Part shown: piece after piece, positions 3,701-61,000 of the stretch
Layout: each line of letters begins with the position of its first letter
Numbering within the stretch: position 1 is the first letter of the stretch
NCBI GenBank assembly: GCA_965285935.1
Contig: OZ260661.1
Coordinates: 125,240,001 to 125,304,000 of the forward strand
DNA: 64,000 nucleotides
Direction: 5' to 3'
Origin: Ophelia neglecta
Taxonomy: Eukaryota
Program-made: the position numbers and the translations under genes
The notes under the pieces: generated by a model
What the model saw: only the letters and a program-made list of their open reading frames with translations
What the model was told of the DNA's origin: nothing
Databases searched by the model: none

Positions 3701-6700
3701 AACAGAATAAAGCTTTATGTGAAATAAATATTCTCCTGACAGCGACAAGGTTGTCTGCACTATGAATCTCAGTATCGTAGTCAGTGAAGCCACTCTAGTC
3801 AGGGAATCTAATTCTTGTCATTAAATCTACTCTGGAGTCAATAGTCATCTACAGTAGTCAATTAATCTACTCTAGTCAAGTATTATTACTCAATATGGAT
3901 GAAGCTACTTGTATTTCAATACTCTTCCCGAAGACATTTAATTTACTCTGTATCAATGAATCTGGTCTTAGTCAATTAATAATCTAGCCTTAGTCAATTA
4001 ATCATCTAGTCTTAGTCAATTAATGGTGTACAGTAGTCTTAGTCAATTAATGATCTAGTCTTAGTCAATTAATGATCTTGTATTAGTCAAATAATGATCT
4101 ACCGATAGTCATTTAATTTTGCTCTGTATCAATAAATCTAGTCTTAGTCAATTAATGATCTTGTTTTAAGTATAGTTTTTAGTCAATCAATGATCTAGCC
4201 TTAGTCAATTAATCATCTAGTCTTAGTCAATTAATGGTGTACAGTGGTCTTAGTCAATTAATGATCTAGTCTTAGTCAATTAATGATCTTGTATTAGTCA
4301 AATAATGATCTACCCATAGTCATTTAATTTTGCTCTGTATCAATGAATCTAGTCTTAGTCAATTAATGATCTTGTTTTAGGTATAGTTTTTAGTCAATTA
4401 ATGATCTAGCCTTAGTCAATTAATCATCTAGTCTTAGTCAATTAATGGTGTACAGTAGACTTAGTCAATTAATGATCTAGTCTTAGTCAATTAATGATCT
4501 TGTATTAGTCAAATAATGATCTACCCATAGTCATTTAATTTTGCTCTGTATCAATGAATCTAGTCTTAGTCAATTAATGATCTTGTTTTAAGTATAGTTT
4601 TTAGTCAATTAATGATCTAGCCTTAGTCAATTAATCATCTAGTCTTAGTCAATTAATGGTGTACAGTAGTCTTAGTCAATTATTAATTTAATGATCTAGT
4701 CTTAGTCAATTAATGATCTTGTATTAGTCAAATAATGATCTACCGATAGTCATTTAATTTTGCTCTGTATCAATGAATCTAGTCTTAGTCAATTAATGAT
4801 CTTGTTTTAAGTATAGTTTTTAGTCAATCAATGATCTAGCCTTAGTCAATTAATCATCTAGTCTTAGTCAATTAATGGTGTACAGTAGTCTTAGTCAATT
4901 AATGATCTAGTCTTAGTCAATTAATGATCTTGTATTAGTCAAATAATGATCTACCCATAGTCATTTAATTTTGCTCTGTATCAATGAATCTAGTCTTAGT
5001 CAATTAATGATCTTGTTTTAGGTATAGTTTTTAGTCAATTAATGATCTAGCCTTAGTCAATTAATCATCTAGTCTTAGTCAATTAATGGTGTACAGTAGT
5101 CTTAGTCAATTAATGATCTAGTCTTAGTCAATTAATGATCTTGTATTAGTCAAATAATGATCTACCCATAGTCATTTTATTTTGCTCTGTATCAATGAAT
5201 CTAGTCTTAGTCAATTAATGATCTTGTTTTAAGTATAGTTTTTAGTCAATTAATGATCTAGCCTTAGTCAATTAATCATCTAGTCTTAGTCAATTAATGG
5301 TGTACAGTAGTCTTAGTCAATTAATGATCTAGTCTTAGTCAATTAATGATCTTGTATTAGTCAAATAATGATCTACCCATAGTCATTTAATTTTGCTCTG
5401 TATCAATGAATCTAGTCTTAGTCAATTAATGATCTTGTTTTAAGTATAGTTCTTAGTCAATTAATGATCTAGCCTTCATCAATGAACCTCCTCGCTGTGA
5501 ATGAATGAATAGTCCTACGCAATGAAACTACTTTTGACACTGAATCTATTAATTTCTTACCAGCAAATATTTTTTTATTCAATTAGCTTTAGTACATTAC
5601 AATCTTTTTTAAATGTTTAAATGTCTTGAGTTAAAGCAATTCATTTGTTATTCACTGTTGTATTTGCTTCAGATTCTCAATGCTATAACAGAGGACATTT
5701 TAGATCACAACGGCAGCTTCCGCAGCCCATTAGAGCAAGTCTCCTTCATACGCAAACAGTATGAATGTGGAGGTATGTGTTTATAAACCTTGACAGCATC
5801 AAGTCCATAGCAGATGCTCTGCAGAAAATGGTGTCTTTTTGCCATTCCTTGATATGGCCTCAGTTTATCTAAATGTGCTACCACTTAGATCTTGTCATAC
5901 AGTGTTTATTATAAGTTTTTTAATGGGATGGCGACTACTGTAGGCTTTTAAAAAGCTTGTTAGGCCTTGATCAGAATTTAAATTTAAATAGTGGTGTGGG
6001 CCGGACAGTTTTGACTTTAATTTAGGCTTTGTTTTTAATTGTTATATTTTTTGACAATAAAAAAAAAAATTGCATTGTTTGTATAATTCTGGACAATACA
6101 AATTCAAATCTTATTTATTGTCATGAAAGCCTTTTATACATAAAGCATTAAATGTGGGTACAAAACTTAGGTACTAGTGCCTTGACTACTTCCTCTACAG
6201 TAGTATGGTGACAAAAGGTGGTTAACAAGATTGTGCAAATAGTAATGGAGCTATGGGGCTGAAATTGACTGGGAGGAAGCGTTTTAGGCCATACATGAAC
6301 TGATTAACTTTTGGCTGAAATCTGAATATGATAAGTTAACATAGCAGTGACTAATCAATATGTGATTGGCAAAAATGTAAAAAATTTTTGCTTTTCTTGC
6401 CATTTCATGCGATATCAATCGTTTTGAGCAATTTAAATATATTGGGGGTCTTTGGGGGGTTGGGGTGGGTGTGGGACCCACTCTTGCTTTGACTTCGCCC
6501 GGGAGTGATTTTGTGACAGACCTGTTTATTATCCCTTTTATGATATATTTAGATTGTTCTGACTTTCAGACTATGAAGACCTGTACCTGGTCATACATAA
6601 CATAGATGGGGTGATGTTAAGAGCTGAGAAGGTCCAGTCTGTACTTAGTATGCTGGCCCAGGTCAGAGGCCTTCACATCATTGCATCCATAGACCACATC

Positions 6701-41400: not shown

Positions 41401-44400
41401 GAAGTCTGGCTTAATGTTATATGATGTATATATTAATACTGGGAAATATTGTGTGCCTAAAGTTTTATTTGATATCTTCTTTGTGTGTGTTGTTATCAGC
41501 AATGATCTGCGAGCATTTACCCATGTATTTGACAAGAGGCACTCCACTTCTTAATTTATACTCCAAGCAGAAAGGGGCGAGCGGCACTACGAAAGTCAGT
41601 GATAACTGATAAGGAGATTATATACTCCTGGCGCACAACTTCCTACACCAGAACAAGAGTATTAATGTGCTGTGCATCCACCAACAGTGACAACCTCATG
41701 TCCGCTGCCCATCCTTCACCCCTACCTAAGAAAATTGCCATGCCCACCTTTTTTTTCTGTTGATATTTTACTAAGTGCAGGTGGACCGTGGTGCTTGTGG
41801 GTGAATCCCTGGCTGGGTCCCGAAATGATACCTTTTTTTTAGAAAAGTCTGAAAAATTCTCATGAGGCTCACGTGTATTATTCTCATTCCAAAAAACAAA
41901 TAAAAATTGGAAGGATGTGTGCTTTAAAATAAGTGATCAGAGGTAGTAGACTGGGCCTGTCTCCCCCATGTTTAAAGTGATCAGAGGTAGTAGACTGGGC
42001 CTTTCTCCCCCATGTTAAAAGTGATCAGAGGTAGTAGACTGGGCCGGTCTCCTCCATGTTTAAAGTGATCAGAGGTAGTAGACTGGGCCTGTCTCCCCCA
42101 TGTTTAAAGTGATCAGAGGTAGTAGACTGGGCCTGTCTCCCCCATGTTTAAAGTGATCAGAGGTAGTAGACTGGGCCTTTCTCCCCCATGTTAAAAGTGA
42201 TCAGAGGTAGTAGACTGGGCCTGTCTCCCCCATGTTTAAAGTGATCAGAGGTAGTAGACTGGGCCGGTCTCCTCCATGCTTAAAGTGATCAGAGGTAGTA
42301 GACTGGGCCGGTCTCCTCCATGTTTAAAGTGATCTGAGGTAGTAGACTGGGCCTGTCTCCCCCATGTTTAAAGTGATCAGAGGTAGTAGACTGGGCCTGT
42401 CTCCTCCATGTTTAAAGTGATCAGAGGTAGTAGACTGGGCCTGTCTCCTCCATGTATAAAATGATCAGAAGCAGTAGACTGGTCCTGTCTCCCCCATGTT
42501 TAAAGTGATCAGAGGTAGTAGACTGGGCCTTCCTCCCCCATGTTTAAAGTGATCAGAGGTAGTAGACTGGGCCTGTCTCCCCCATGTTTAAAGTGATCAG
42601 AGGTAGTAGACTGGGCCTGTCTCCTCCATGTTTAAAGGGATCAGAGGTAGTAGACTGGGCCTGTCTCCTCCATGTTTAAAGTGATCAGAGGTAGTAGACT
42701 GGGCCTGCCTCCCCCATGTTTTTATAGATCAGAGGTAGTAGACTGGGCCTGTCTCCTCCATGTTTAAAGTGATCAGAGGTAGTAGACTGGGCCTGTCTCC
42801 CCCATGTTTAAAGTGATCAGAGGTAGTACACTGGGCCTGCCTCCCCCATGTTTTAATAGATCAGAGGTAGTAGACTGGGCCTGCCTCCCCCATGTTTAAA
42901 GTGATCAGAGGTAGTAGACTGGGCCTGTCTCCCCCATGTTTAAAGTGATCAGAGGTAGTAGACTGGGCCTGTCTCCTCCATGTATAAAGTGATCAGAGGT
43001 AGTAGACTGGGCCTGTCTCCCCCATGTTTAAAGTGATCAGAGGTAATAGACTGGGCCTGTCTCCTCCATGTTTAAAGTGATCAGAGGTAGTAGACTGAGC
43101 CTGTCTCCCCCATGTTTAAAGTGATCAGAGGTAGTAGACTGGGCCTGTCTCCCCCATGTTTAAAGTGATCAGAGGTAGTAGACTGGGCCTGTCTCCCCCA
43201 TGTTTAAAGTGATCAGAGGTAATAGACTGGGCCTGTCTCCCCCATGTTTAAAGTGATCAGAGGTAGTAGACTGAGCCTGTCTCCCCCATGTTTAAAGTGA
43301 TCAGAGGTAGTAGACTGGGCCTGTCTCCCCCATGTTTAAAGTGATCAGAGGTAGTAGACTGGGCCTGTCTCCTCCGTGTTTAAAGTGATCAGAGGTAGTA
43401 GACTGGGCCTGTCTCCCCCATGTTTTTATAGATCAGAGATAGTAGACTGGGCCTGCCTCCCCCATGTTTAAAGTGATCAGAGGTAGTAGACTGGGCCTGT
43501 CTCCTCCATGTTTAAAGTGATCAGAGGTAGTAGACTGGGCCTGTCTCCTCCATGTTTTTATAGATCAGAGGTAGTAGACTGGGCCTGTCTCCTCCATGTT
43601 TTTATAGATCAGAGATAGTAGACTGGGCCTGCCTCCCCCATGTTTAAAGTGATCAGAGGTAGTAGACTGGGCCGGTCTCCTCCATGTTTAAAGTGATCAG
43701 AGGTAGTAGACTGGGCCTGTCTCCCCCATGTTTAAAGTGATCAGAGGTAGTAGACTGGGCCTGTCTCCCCCATGTTTAAAGTGATCAGAGGTAGTAGACT
43801 GGGCCTTTCTCCCCCATGTTAAAAGTGATCAGAGGTAGTAGACTGGGCCTGTCTCCCCCATGTTTAAAGTGATCAGAGGTAGTAGACTGGGCCGGTCTCC
43901 TCCATGCTTAAAGTGATCAGAGGTAGTAGACTGGGCCGGTCTCCTCCATGTTTAAAGTGATCTGAGGTAGTAGACTGGGCCTGTCTCCCCCATGTTTAAA
44001 GTGATCAGAGGTAGTAGACTGGGCCTGTCTCCTCCATGTTTAAAGTGATCAGAGGTAGTAGACTGGGCCTGTCTCCTCCATGTATAAAATGATCAGAAGC
44101 AGTAGACTGGTCCTGTCTCCCCCATGTTTAAAGTGATCAGAGGTAGTAGACTGGGCCTTCCTCCCCCATGTTTAAAGTGATCAGAGGTAGTAGACTGGGC
44201 CTGTCTCCCCCATGTTTAAAGTGATCAGAGGTAGTAGACTGGGCCTGTCTCCTCCATGTTTAAAGGGATCAGAGGTAGTAGACTGGGCCTGTCTCCTCCA
44301 TGTTTAAAGTGATCAGAGGTAGTAGACTGGGCCTGCCTCCCCCATGTTTTTATAGATCAGAGGTAGTAGACTGGGCCTGTCTCCTCCATGTTTAAAGTGA

Positions 44401-47327
44401 TCAGAGGTAGTAGACTGGGCCTGTCTCCCCCATGTTTAAAGTGATCAGAGGTAGTACACTGGGCCTGCCTCCCCCATGTTTTAATAGATCAGAGGTAGTA
44501 GACTGGGCCTGCCTCCCCCATGTTTAAAGTGATCAGAGGTAGTAGACTGGGCCTGTCTCCCCCATGTTTAAAGTGATCAGAGGTAGTAGACTGGGCCTGC
44601 CTCCCCCATGTTTTTATAGATCAGAGGTAGTAGACTGGGCCTGTCTCCCCCATGTTTAAAGTGATCAGAGGTAGTAGACTGGGCCTGTCTCCTCCATGTA
44701 TAAAGTGATCAGAGGTAGTAGACTGGGCCTGTCTCCCCCATGTTTAAAGTGATCAGAGGTAATAGACTGGGCCTGTCTCCTCCATGTTTAAAGTGATCAG
44801 AGGTAGTAGACTGAGCCTGTCTCCCCCATGTTTAAAGTGATCAGAGGTAGTAGACTGGGCCTGTCTCCCCCATGTTTAAAGTGATCAGAGGTAGTAGACT
44901 GGGCCTGTCTCCTCCGTGTTTAAAGTGATCAGAGGTAGTAGACTGGGCCTTCCTCCCCCATGTTTAAAGTGATCAGAGGTAGTACACTGGGCCTGCCTCC
45001 CCCATGTTTTAATAGATCAGAGGTAGTAGACTGGGCCTGCCTCCCCCATGTTTAAAGTGATCAGAGGTAGTAGACTGGGCCTGTCTCCCCCATGTTTAAA
45101 GTGATCAGAGGTAGTAGACTGGGCCTGCCTCCCCCATGTTTTTATAGATCAGAGGTAGTAGACTGGGCCTGTCTCCCCCATGTTTAAAGTGATCAGAGGT
45201 AGTAGACTGAGCCTGTCTCCCCCATGTTTAAAGTGATCAGAGGTAGTAGACTGGGCCTGTCTCCCCCATGTTTAAAGTGATCAGAGGTAGTAGACTGGGC
45301 CTGTCTCCTCCGTGTTTAAAGTGATCAGAGGTAGTAGACTGGGCCTGTCTCCCCCATGTTTTTATAGATCAGAGATAGTAGACTGGGCCTGCCTCCCCCA
45401 TGTTTAAAGTGATCAGAGGTAGTAGACTGGGCCTGTCTCCTCCATGTTTAAAGTGATCAGAGGTAGTAGACTGGGCCTGTCTCCTCCATGTTTTTATAGA
45501 TCAGAGATAGTAGACTGGGCCTGTCTCCTCCGTGTTTAAAGTGATCAGAGGTAGTAGACTGGGCCTGCCTCCCCCATGTTTTTATAGATCAGAGATAGTA
45601 GACTGAGCCTGTCTCCCCCATGTTTAAAGTGATCAGAGGTAGTAGACTGGGCCTGTCTCCCCCATGTTTAAAGTGATCAGAGGTAGTAGACTGGGCCTGT
45701 CTCCTCCGTGTTTAAAGTGATCAGAGGTAGTAGACTGGGCCTGTCTCCCCCATGTTTTTATAGATCAGAGATAGTAGACTGGGCCTGCCTCCCCCATGTT
45801 TAAAGTGATCAGAGGTAGTAGACTGGGCCTGTCTCCTCCATGTTTAAAGTGATCAGAGGTAGTAGACTGGGCCTGTCTCCTCCATGTTTTTATAGATCAG
45901 AGATAGTAGACTGGGCCTGTCTCCTCCGTGTTTAAAGTGATCAGAGGTAGTAGACTGGGCCTGCCTCCCCCATGTTTTTATAGATCAGAGATAGTAGACT
46001 GGGCCTGTCTCCTCCATGTTTAAAGTGATCAGAGGTAGTAGACTGGGCCTGTCTCCCCCATGTTTTTATAGATCAGAGGTAGTAGACTGGGCCTATCTCC
46101 CCCATGTTTTTAGTGATCAGAGGTAGTAGACTGGGCCTGTCTCCCCCATGTTTTTATAGATCAGAGGTAGTAGACTGGGCCTGTCTCCCCCATGTTTTTA
46201 TAGATCAGAGGTAGTAGACTGGGCCTGTCTCCCCCATGTTTTTATAGATCAGAGATAGTAGACTGGGCCTGTAGTGATGACTAATGACTGTAGTATTCCT
46301 GGACGTATCTATGGGCTCATCCTCTCTACATTTAAAAATGTTGAGAGGGGTGGGCCAGAGAAGTTTCTCTTGAGGCCTGCTCCCCGGCACATTATTTAAA
46401 GCACTAGCCCTAAATGAGTAGTTTGTCATTTTTGGCCGATCTAAGTGAGTTGTGTTTCATTTCATATATTCACCCATAAGTTGTTGGTCATTTCTGGCCA
46501 GATCTAAATGAGTTGTGTTTGATTTCAGATATCCGCCCATACAAGTGTAAGTTTTGTGACTACTACGCTAGGACTAATAGCCAACTCAAGGTGCACATGA
46601 TGAGACACCAGGGTAAGTCAAGCTTCTAGAAATTATATTTGTATTTCCCATGGCATGATGGGAAGGTCCCACAGGGGGGGGGGGGTACTTGCAAGGTGGG
46701 GGGGGGGGTACTTTTAAACATTTTTCATATAAGTGTGCAGATGTAGGTTAAGAGACCATATATTTGGATATGTCAAATGAAATGCAATAAGCATAACCTT
46801 GGTAAGGTCATGGGATCTGAAAAAACATGTACCCTTGGGAGAAAAGGTTTTCATAAAAAAGCAGTAATTTGCATTTTAAGTGCCATGATTGTTTCAGGCT
46901 AGTAGTGTAGTTTATATGCAGTAGTATAATTTATACAGTGTGTTTTGTATGCTGTTGAACCCATCAAGAAATCATGTCTTATAATCTACTTTATTTATAT
47001 TATTATTTATGTCCTGCTTTTGCATTTAAGAAAAGAAATACTGGCCTTGCTTATAAAGGTTATAAGTTTAAAGTATTTATGTCATTTTTTCTTATAACAG
47101 GAATACGGGAATTTCACTGCAAGCTGTGCAATTACAAGGGTGTAACCCAGTCTGACCTCAACCGGCACATGAAGTCGCAGATACACATGATGAAAGCTCG
47201 CAACGAGTGCTCTCACTGCGGAGAGGGGTTCGTCTCGCCAATGAATCTGGAGAAGCACTACCACGAGAAGCATTTCTCACACTACGAACAGCTGGCCCAG
47301 GCCCAGCAGACGGGTGCCACCAAATAA
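35412..47327 (+). CDS. C2H2 zinc-finger transcription factor, 10 fingers in 2-2-2-4 clusters (5 coding exons, 1053 aa)
   Basis: Exons 35412-35855, 37396-39653, 40307-40455, 46529-46612, 47101-47327 sum to 3162 nt, all GT-AG and in phase. Fingers: CYYC, CK|DC, CHMC, CTYC, CQFC, CTYC, CSYC, CKFC, CKLC, CSHC, with linkers such as HTGYKP and HEDIRPY. A likely upstream acceptor at 34943 gives a ~470-nt leader in the first coding exon. Orthology is not assigned. Confidence 0.93.
40819..40973. repeat. 23-bp minisatellite (agggctttgggtggtatttgccc), ~3.5 good copies plus degenerate upstream copies
   Basis: Direct tandem units at 40895, 40918, 40941 and 40964 (partial). Confidence 0.85.
41931..46271. 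repeat. 44-bp intronic satellite (aagtgatcagaggtagtagactgggcctgtctcccccatgttta), ~99 copies
   Basis: Head-to-tail 44-bp units without spacers fill most of the zinc-finger intron 40456-46528. Rare variants recur at a 1628-bp offset (37 units). Confidence 0.98.
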
Positions 47328-58060: not shown

Positions 58061-61000
58061 TTAAAGTAGTATACAAATTGATGTCTTTTCTCCTCCACTA
58101 GCCTTCTCGCCTGGTTCTGTAAAAAAAACATAGATAAAGCTACTCTTCATTCGACAGTGAAACTTATGGCTGAAGAACAACATTTTAACTTTGTACTAAG
58201 TTGATTTGGGTAACTATAACTGTTAACCTTTTAACCCTTATACAAGCTATGGTTTACTTTAATAAAAAAAAGTATTCAGCATTATCTGACACTAATGAAG
58301 ATTTTGTAAAAGTAATGTTCATGAATTTATGCAAATTAACCATAAATACACAAGATGGTAAGAAAGTGAGCCACAGCACATTGTTAGTTTAAATGAGACG
58401 GTATGAGGCTACTCTATGACAGTTAATAAAATGCAGACTCAAATATATATTCAACTTTGAGAGACTACTGAAATCAAAAGTTAAAAAAGTTTATATAAAC
58501 TAGACAAAGTCAGCTAGAATACATTAGTATGGTCAAGTGGATACTGCCTATCATGTTAAAAGTCCTCCTCAAAAACACATGTGTATTAACTTTCTTAGTG
58601 GAAATGAAAAACAACTTTTGATATTGTCACATCACAATGGACACCCCACCAGGCTATATTGCTTTCAAAAACCTGTTTTACTGATTTTGGTTAAAAATAT
58701 TTACATATTAAAGTTTCGCACAACACCTATAATATTATCAGGTTAGACTTATTAGTTAAAGCTAGTAGCCACTTATATTTACATGTTACTTACTGCTGGT
58801 AGGTTTTTTCTTCTCTTGGGGAGGAGGTGGCCTTGGAGAAGGAGCACCACCTCCGTCCTCATCTATTTTTATCATATGTTTAATCAATGTCAGCTATTTC
58901 ATAACTTAAATACATTACTAACTACATGTACATGATTCAATTGTGTAATCTGGTGTTCATTAAATCAAGTGCAAGGCTCGAGTCAAACATTCTACATAAA
59001 TTAAATTGACCTACGATTAAGAAATTTAATAGATAAGATCCCTAGCGGACAATCCATTATCATTTCAAATCATGGAGTAATTGGGCAGGTAGTGCTTACT
59101 GATGTGTTCATCAGTGATTAAAACGACAGGTTGCTTAAAGCTTTTCCAGTGACATGCAGGCACAGAGTGGCAGATATGAATCTTGTGCTACTAATAAAGT
59201 AAATATATGCCACCGTTTTCTCCCACGTTTTGCTTCTGGAGCTGCCATGAAGCTGGGTAGAGATTCAGGCGACATACCATGTTAATTACCTGCTCCCTTT
59301 TCCTTCGGTACCATCTTGAGGCACTTCTCAGCAGCGTCCTTAGTGGGAGCCTGCAGCAGTTCCTTGATCAGCTTGGTGGAGATGCGAGGTTTCTGATGTT
59401 CCTCTGCAAGCTTTACCAATTCCCTGAACTGTGCCTGAAAAATACACACAAAATAGTAATTATTTTCTTCATTAAGCTGTAAAAGAAACGATTTTTCAAG
59501 CAGTCAAGCTGATTGCTAGTTGTAGACCTCTTGGCAGCATGGCCATCGAAGACTCTCAAATTGCACATTAACCATTACAGTGTCCTTAGTATGTCCAATG
59601 CTTCACTGCTCTGTTCTGAACACTCAGAAACTTTGTTCATCACTTACCTTTATATTAAATTACAATGAGGAGAAATGGCATTTTTTCAGAACTAAAGGAG
59701 TTATGTATCAGACCTTTCGGTTTATCACCTAAATGATAAATTAACTTACCACTTTCTGCTCATTCTTTTCAGCTCGTTTTTTTTCCATGACAAGTTCCAT
59801 AGCATATTTCACTTTCATTGGATCAACAGCCTGGAAAATATGATTAAACATGATTCAGTCCCAACCTCCTGCAAAATAAATAAGGAGACTAGTTGACCCC
59901 TGACATTACCCCTGCCTTAGTCTCCACTGACCTAAACTAGAACACATCACTCAGGAAGGAAAACTCTGGCTTCTTTTAATACCACTTCATTACTATAAGT
60001 AGGTACTGATATCTGACCCATAGCCTGCTGTTGACACTTCAGTTGTTTACAGCATATACATGTACCTTGGTATTAGAGTTAGCTGCTGATATCTGACCCA
60101 TAGTCTGCTGTTGTTTGTAGCCCCTACCTTGGTATTAGAGTTAGCTGCTGATATCTGACCCTTAGCCTGCTGTTGTTTGTAGCCCCTACCTTGGTATTAG
60201 AGTTAGCTGCTGATATCTGACCCTTAGCCTGCTGTTGTTTGTAGCCCCTACCTTGGTATTAGAGTTAGCTGCTGATATCTGACCCTTAGCCTGCTGTTGT
60301 TTGTAGCCCCTACCTTGGTATTAGAGTTAGCTGCTGATATCTGACCCTTAGCCTCCTGTTGTTTGTAGCCCCTACCTTGGTATTAGAGTTAGCTGCTGAT
60401 ATCTGACCCTTAGCCTGCTGTTGTTTGTAGCCCCTACCTTGGTATTAGAGTTAGCTGCTGATATCTGACCCATAGTCTGCTGTTGTTTGTAGCCCCTACC
60501 TTGGTATTAGAGTTAGCTGCTGATATCTGACCCTTAGTCTGTTGTTGTTTTAGTCCCTACCTTGGTATTAGAGTTAGCTGCTGATATCTGACCCATAGTC
60601 TGCTGTTGTTTGTAGCCCCTACCTTGGTATTAGAGTTAGCTGCTGATATCTGACCCTTAGCCTGCTGTTGTTTGTAGCCCTTACCTTGGTTTTAGAGTTA
60701 GCTGCTGATATCTGACCCTTAGCCTGCTGTTGTTTGTAGCCCCTACCTTGGTATTAGAGTTAGCTGCTGATATCTGACCCTTAGCCTGCTGTTGTTTGTA
60801 GCCCCTACCTTGGTATTAGAGTTAGCTGCTGATATCTGACCCTTAGCCTGCTGTTGTTTTTGCAGTGTCTCTCTCGTGTTGGCTGTCTTCTTGGTTTTTG
60901 GAGCTTTCTGTTTGCCCATGATCAGTAGTGTGATGGCTCCGTCCATCAGGTACTTAACATTCTGACAAAGAAAGAGGTTTAATCATAAAAGTAACAGTTT

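Follow-up and report, generated by a model that had tools for sequence, protein, structure and literature searches.

A 62-bp minisatellite reiterates the 5' splice site of a KIF28-type kinesin gene in Ophelia neglecta

Gene and array at the locus

The window examined in this study is a 64,000-nucleotide stretch of the Ophelia neglecta genome (assembly GCA_965285935.1, contig OZ260661.1, positions 125,240,001 to 125,304,000), numbered here from its first letter. On its minus strand the window carries the tail of a kinesin gene of the KIF28/KLP-6 type, in which the end of one coding exon (Ee), its 5' splice site (donor) and the adjoining bases of the intron were found to be tandemly repeated. 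Nine tail exons (Ea to Ei; Table 1) were delineated, with GT-AG borders throughout and a continuous reading frame to the stop codon. Database searches of this gene model were made one exon at a time. Single-exon matches to Pfam were weak (KIF1B, E 0.03; C2, E 0.007), and exon Ea, searched against a representative library, matched for the most part fragments the size of an exon, along with about nine long proteins that were usable. Collinear full-length matches named KIF28P, KIF28 or KLP-6 were identified in Biomphalaria glabrata, Mya arenaria and Limulus, and 76 relatives, nearly all of them named KIF28 or KLP-6, were recovered when the tail of the Biomphalaria protein served as the query of a word search. 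The proteins nearest to the exons of the window were those of annelids, including Paralvinella (52-80% per exon) as well as Owenia and Capitella. When the KIF28 proteins of Paralvinella and Owenia were compared by tblastn with the window plus 40 kb upstream, the motor, FHA, stalk and tail exons were found ordered and open over about 21 kb, in a domain order collinear with that of named KIF28 proteins. Exon Ee and its orthologous counterparts, among them those of Owenia and Biomphalaria, could be aligned residue for residue. The KIF28 identity proposed by the first-pass annotation (an earlier reading of this DNA from its letters) is upheld by these full-length, collinear matches and, judged by such comparisons, the gene is a KIF28/KLP-6-type kinesin-3 of a lophotrochozoan. 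The gene also looks intact, as the motor, FHA and tail exons were all found and open and the single-nucleotide polymorphisms (SNPs) detected in an exon (see below) were synonymous. The six consecutive tail exons Ea to Ef are every one of phase 0-0 and of a length that is a multiple of three. No match was returned by an Rfam scan of the window.

The array was detected by tandem repeat search (TRF), which called it with a period of 62, 97% matches and no indels and placed its start inside the coding exon Ee. The 62-bp unit consists of the last ~51 nt of exon Ee, the donor and 11 nt of intron. When every AAGGTA on the strand was indexed, 13 donor-like sites of the form AAG/GTA (where the slash marks the splice junction) were found in the array, in agreement with the 13-fold donor array reported earlier, and the earlier description of the unit was accurate in each detail checked. 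These donors are spaced 62 nt apart with a single 61-nt exception, and 12 of the 13 have the sequence GTAGGG or GTAAGG; owing to the end of the array, the last one is GTACAT. Of the 12 extra donors, 10 share the 9-mer of the authentic donor, and the other two are a stronger and a weaker variant of it. The units, aligned in register, are 97-100% identical to one another, and the unit at the far edge is degenerate. Among the differences, unit 3 (60684) has AAT changed to AAA together with the donor GTAAGG, which the first-pass annotation had correctly described as nearer to the consensus than the GTAGGG of the real exon; units 5, 7 and 13 carry ACT ATG in place of GCT AAG; unit 9 has GAG in place of CAG; and unit 6 (donor 60499) has a one-base deletion plus two changes. 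A search of the 762-Mb assembly with the 62-bp unit found the degenerate 14th partial unit at a 78% match and no match elsewhere, and the array is therefore considered to have been amplified locally rather than to belong to a dispersed satellite. It is a head-to-tail tandem of a unit in the 10-160-bp range, the authentic splice-site sequence is reiterated within the intron, and the first monomer spans the genuine and conserved boundary of exon Ee, as expected if, in line with the earlier proposal, the end of the exon and its donor were the seed of the array. By these features the array is classed with the exon-intron boundary minisatellites, which have been known since the 1990s.

Table 1. Positions of the array, its donors and the exons of the KIF28-type gene in the window, and the orthologous introns of three other species
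Feature	Position	Strand	Details
62-bp minisatellite	60063-60859	minus	12.9 copies; tandem repeat search (TRF), unit unique in genome, depth excess in DNA contigs
13 donors (GT starts)	60808, 60746, 60684, 60622, 60560, 60499, 60437, 60375, 60313, 60251, 60189, 60127, 60065	minus	
Authentic 5' splice site	60800-60808	minus	AAG/GTAGGGGCT; G of GT at 60808; only donor in frame with exon Ef
Unit 3 pseudo-donor	60676-60684	minus	AAG/GTAAGG; one base nearer consensus than authentic GTAGGG
Degenerate 14th partial unit	59998-60050	minus	34-nt core, 31/34 identical to unit, plus 12-nt insertion
Exon Ea	63603-63469	minus	GT-AG borders
Exon Eb	63031-62900	minus	GT-AG borders
Exon Ec	62493-62332	minus	GT-AG borders
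Exon Ed	61486-61361	minus	GT-AG borders
Exon Ee	60961-60809	minus	51 codons, phase 0-0; open in single frame; ends ...QQQAKGQISAANSNTK
Intron Ee-Ef	59831-60808	minus	978 nt; 235 nt if 12 extra units removed
Exon Ef	59830-59750	minus	27 codons, AVDPMKVKYAMELV...; normal acceptor ttttccag/G
Exon Eg	59434-59290	minus	GT-AG borders
Exon Eh	58862-58794	minus	GT-AG borders
Exon Ei	58116-58061	minus	GT-AG borders; last exon, ends CILL-stop
Orthologous intron, Biomphalaria (locus L006)			596 nt; no array
Orthologous intron, Owenia (locus L007)			293 nt; no array
Orthologous intron, Paralvinella (locus L008)			~225 nt; no array, dinucleotide runs only

Consequences of donor choice

The outcome of joining the donors to exon Ef was computed. 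Donor 1 keeps the frame and is the sole donor to do so. Use of donor 2 lengthens the exon by 62 nt and puts exon Ef out of frame, such that a stop is reached four codons into exon Ef, and all donors after the second retain a TAG from the AGG/TAG at the second donor. With a frameshift or a TAG in every extension, the protein would be truncated with the loss of its last ~125 residues, and the tail exons Eg, Eh and Ei would be lost with the use of any pseudo-donor; simple extension to a later donor is thus unproductive, as had been stated earlier. Masking of the pseudo-sites by RNA structure was considered and rejected, as the exon end, folded together with two units, gave no structure beyond that of shuffled controls (z = +0.95), and nothing in the fold set the real site apart from its copies. 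A search of public sequencing runs for the organism returned three runs of DNA type and no RNA run. No spliced fragment was found when the 51-aa exon was used in a word search of the proteins covered, a result that says little as these were of 28-89 aa only.

Conservation of the copied junction

The array copies a peptide (...AKGQISAANSNTK in this gene) that was found to correspond to a conserved motif, KGxxxAANxNxK, which is single-copy in ~20 orthologues and reads EAKGQSSAANTNVK in Owenia, RKGQTSAANTNTK in Patella and AKGGVAAANDNLK in Biomphalaria. Zero residues separate this motif from the Ef-type sequence xVDxxKVKYMME in 15 of 20 orthologues; the remaining five depart from this by 2-4 residues in the local alignments. 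At the DNA level, an intron is located directly after the lysine of the motif (...NTK here) in three other species (Biomphalaria, Owenia and Paralvinella), which stand for three other phyla or classes. Since the intron position is conserved in these three species but free of an array, the amplification is lineage-specific and recent, on an old and conserved junction. A Logan contig from a related species (L009; 993 bp, run ERR14113986) was also identified, which is 88% identical to the window in Ea and 77% in Eb and has an Ea-Eb intron of ~200 nt versus 430 nt in the window. This contig ends before the array region; a sister genome in public reads could reveal the Ee-Ef intron as it was before the array.

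The array in independent sequence data

Independent evidence was drawn from Logan contigs of three DNA-type runs, which derive from one sample of one study. These contigs break at the array, such that they cannot span it or count its units, and they provide depth ratios, junctions, SNPs and an indel. The word depth of the unit contigs was 10.4-19.3x that of the unique flanks in the three runs, where the reference predicts 8.3-9.5, and both unique edges of the array (60830-60859 and 60057-60092) were found in independent contigs. The presence of both edges together with the excess in unit depth makes an artefact of assembly unlikely, in support of the array as first read, and the array of the sequenced sample may be somewhat larger in copy number than that of the reference. 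A 53-bp indel (59998-60050) was found to be heterozygous in the sequenced sample and to remove the degenerate 14th unit (joint 59997 to 60051 in all three runs); its position beside the array fits with instability. Exon Ee of the sample has two homozygous SNPs, both synonymous (CTA to CTG and CTG to TTG).

Candidate microexons within the units

The first-pass annotation had also pointed to potential cassette microexons in the units. The segments that follow caaCAG/ or CAGCAG/ were found to be 42 or 39 nt long, of phase 0 and free of stops in the standard units, as described; the exception is the unit at 60499, which has the one-base deletion and where the acceptor reads CAACAG. The branch-point-like motifs were likewise present, with the branch As of CTAAC and CTAAT measured at 33 and 27 nt upstream of the first CAG/. 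The stop-free frame of these segments is explained by its inheritance from exon Ee. Only 7 of 135 possible substitutions (5.2%) create a stop in the segment, and the chance that five to six independent changes avoid stops is P about 0.73-0.77; stop avoidance by the unit variants was accordingly rejected as a sign of selection. The earlier remarks that a polypyrimidine tract is absent and that other AGs intervene were confirmed, with (i) a pyrimidine fraction of 0.25 at the candidate acceptor, compared with 0.55-0.80 in eight of the nine acceptors inferred for the gene and 0.30 in Eh; and (ii) two other AGs, ccaAG and gtAG, that come after the CTAAC/CTAAT motifs and ahead of the proposed AG. 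By these sequence measures, the segments are not preceded by a functional 3' splice site. No extra copy of the motif is present in ~20 orthologues, including sets of X1/X2 isoforms.

Comparison with known systems

Several boundary minisatellites have been studied in other genes. The intron 7 of human F7 (intervening sequence 7, IVS7) contains a 37-bp variable number tandem repeat (VNTR) of 5-9 copies, the first element of which spans the exon 7-IVS7 boundary, and its identical pseudo-sites, which number four to eight, are able to function but are never used as long as an upstream site is intact, even at 91% complementarity to U1 (Borensztajn et al. 2006, PMC1557585). The KIF28 array resembles this system in that the first unit holds the exon end and the authentic donor, the intronic pseudo-sites are identical and most of them would be unproductive if used; the F7 array is length-polymorphic. 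The two differ in that the F7 unit has 4 nt of exonic sequence, whereas 51 of the 62 nt of the KIF28 unit are exonic, such that the copies take in the full exonic context along with a conserved peptide motif, and in that the KIF28 array has 13 sites and lies in a short-intron invertebrate host. Other arrays, as summarised in the same paper (PMC1557585), include those of IFI6 (6-16), with 25 pseudo-sites, and CBS IVS13, with 15-20 repeats, in both of which the two nearest pseudo-sites are also used, and those of LMNB2 (100 bp x 10-15) and PDGF (81 bp x 16-18), in which only the authentic site is used. These four share with KIF28 the 10 to 25 reiterated donors that follow an authentic one and differ in gene and in unit length (up to 100 bp). 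In amphioxus, minisatellite-like duplications of exon-intron boundaries, termed 'mirages', have been described in Adh3, globin (BflGb6/9), troponin C and PGBD5, with length instability, concerted evolution from which the units at the edges are exempt, and undisturbed splicing (Ebner et al. 2010, PMC3087553; Pavelitz et al. 2013, PMC3902484). The near-identical KIF28 units with a degenerate unit at the far edge are in keeping with this pattern of concerted evolution (PMC3087553); the mirages differ in their cephalochordate host and in that some duplicate 3' boundaries, while the present array is in a lophotrochozoan KIF28.

The array may also be set beside tandem exon duplicates, of the type that Kondrashov and Koonin in 2001 and Letunic in 2002 reportedly treated, which give mutually exclusive or cassette exons and consist of complete exons together with both of their splice sites and the adjoining intron. 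The two are alike in having a tandem coding segment that could in principle be alternatively included. In contrast to such duplicates, the KIF28 array copies only the 3' part of the exon and the donor, and its 'acceptor' is a chance CAG, formerly coding, that has no pyrimidine tract.

Interpretation of the array

Overall, we consider it probable that the array is a young and likely neutral boundary minisatellite, or 'mirage', and that its twelve 5' pseudo-sites are passed over entirely or almost entirely. A 62-bp segment, which joins 51 nt of the end of KIF28 exon Ee to the 5' splice site and to 11 nt of the intron beyond, was tandemly amplified, likely by replication slippage or unequal exchange, and the intron was lengthened from roughly 235 to 978 nt with the gain of 12 donor copies. 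From the studied precedents, we infer which donor is used: the authentic upstream donor at 60808 would serve essentially all productive mRNA, and the 12 pseudo-sites would be silent or would leak no further than the one or two units that follow. Any transcripts from such leakage would carry a frameshift or a stop and be cleared by nonsense-mediated decay (NMD), and the array would be without selected function and its 'microexons' unused. Of the two roles suggested by the first-pass annotation, that of a decoy field ignored by the spliceosome agrees with studied precedents such as human F7 IVS7 (PMC1557585).

Certain points weigh against this explanation. The choice of donor is argued by analogy with chordate genes, and short-intron invertebrates may lean more on intron definition. 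As the pseudo-sites share 51 nt of exonic context and the donor of unit 3 is better, some leakage is plausible. Where strong donors are duplicated, classical competition experiments at times show a preference for the site closest to the 3' splice site. The preference among duplicated donors has been noted as debated (PMC1557585). If pseudo-donors 2, 3 or later were leaky, transcripts longer by 62, 124 or more nt would be produced, and the array could act as a dosage dial in which VNTR length modulates KIF28 output, with the frameshifted or TAG-retaining transcripts subject to NMD or translated to a tail-less kinesin that is devoid of the last ~125 residues and of the CaaX-type end of the protein (described below). 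Such a dial would be helped by the stronger GTAAGG donor of unit 3, by the exonic context common to all units and by the size of the extended exons, which at 215 and 277 nt would still be normal. However, the pseudo-sites of F7 are never used even at up to 91% U1 complementarity, and the KIF28 gene is otherwise intact with only synonymous SNPs in the exon, and leakage of this type, the main alternative, is regarded as unlikely, although not negligible. A wider proposal, in which donors 2-3 or occasional 39/42-nt cassettes are used according to copy number and thereby set how much of a CaaX-tailed KIF28 is made or how long its tail is, appears improbable to us.

The second role suggested earlier was that of a satellite-encoded cassette library, in which 39/42-nt phase-0 microexons, entered through caaCAG/CAG/ acceptors, would add copies of (Q)AKGQISAANSNTK to the tail. 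The open frame of the standard-unit segments, the CTAAC/CTAAT motifs 27-33 nt upstream and the conservation of the motif itself among orthologues speak for such a library; however, the frame comes from the exon and stop avoidance is readily due to chance, the acceptor has 25% pyrimidines with two AGs before it, exactly one motif copy is present in each of ~20 orthologues, and a mode of use of this kind is not reported for any studied boundary minisatellite. The library is not supported by this comparison and is held to be very unlikely. That the array is an assembly artefact, or a collapsed or expanded repeat that is not so in the animal, draws on the contigs, which do not span the array, such that its exact copy number and the order of its units are those of the reference; nonetheless, the depth of the unit contigs and the recovery of both unique junctions leave this with hardly any weight. 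KIF28 is a pseudogene in humans, hence the name KIF28P, and the gene or its exon Ee might by comparison be disused in this species, with the array as debris in a decaying locus; the open motor, FHA and tail exons, the plausible splice sites, the conserved CaaX end and the synonymous SNPs are at odds with decay, which we view as highly improbable. As an isolated locus, the array is of little importance, as it adds one more boundary minisatellite, now in a lophotrochozoan kinesin gene. It is of modest value as a natural test case outside vertebrates for the F7 rule that the 'most upstream site wins', to which it is suited because it combines 13 near-identical donors, each with 51 nt of true exonic context, a stronger downstream site and a short-intron host.

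The C-terminus of KIF28 and other repeats of the window

The C-terminus encoded by the last exon (CILL-stop, 58061-58075, minus strand) is a CaaX-type prenylation motif. Among 78 orthologues with a length of 700 aa or more, 50 likewise have an end of the form CxxX (CVLL, CILL, CTIM, CSLQ and others; e.g., P0024, P0138, P0174, and P0185). In the literature searched, two papers contain both KIF28 and prenyl-, and in one of them (PMC8077471) the two terms are unconnected. To judge from these sequences, a lipid-anchored tail may be a conserved and undescribed feature of KIF28. Readthrough of the donor of exon Eg (59282-59434, minus strand) gives ...KEKGAGN-stop, which is identical to the C-terminus of a close relative (P0193), and many orthologue isoforms (e.g., P0152, P0156, and P0158) stop at the matching place with ...KEKGK... 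This suggests a conserved short KIF28 isoform that would be devoid of the acidic linker and the CaaX end.

A second clear splice-donor array was found neither in the window nor in the rest of the KIF28 gene. A 44-bp array (41931-46272; 98.7 copies, 92% identical, 4.3 kb) has GAG/GTAGTA in each unit on the plus strand and was not counted as a second splice-donor minisatellite, as no exon was found at its 5' border. A further array of 211 bp x 7 (3955-5483), the units of which are 97% identical, is built of a 22-bp sub-repeat (TTAGTCAATTAATGATCTAGTC).

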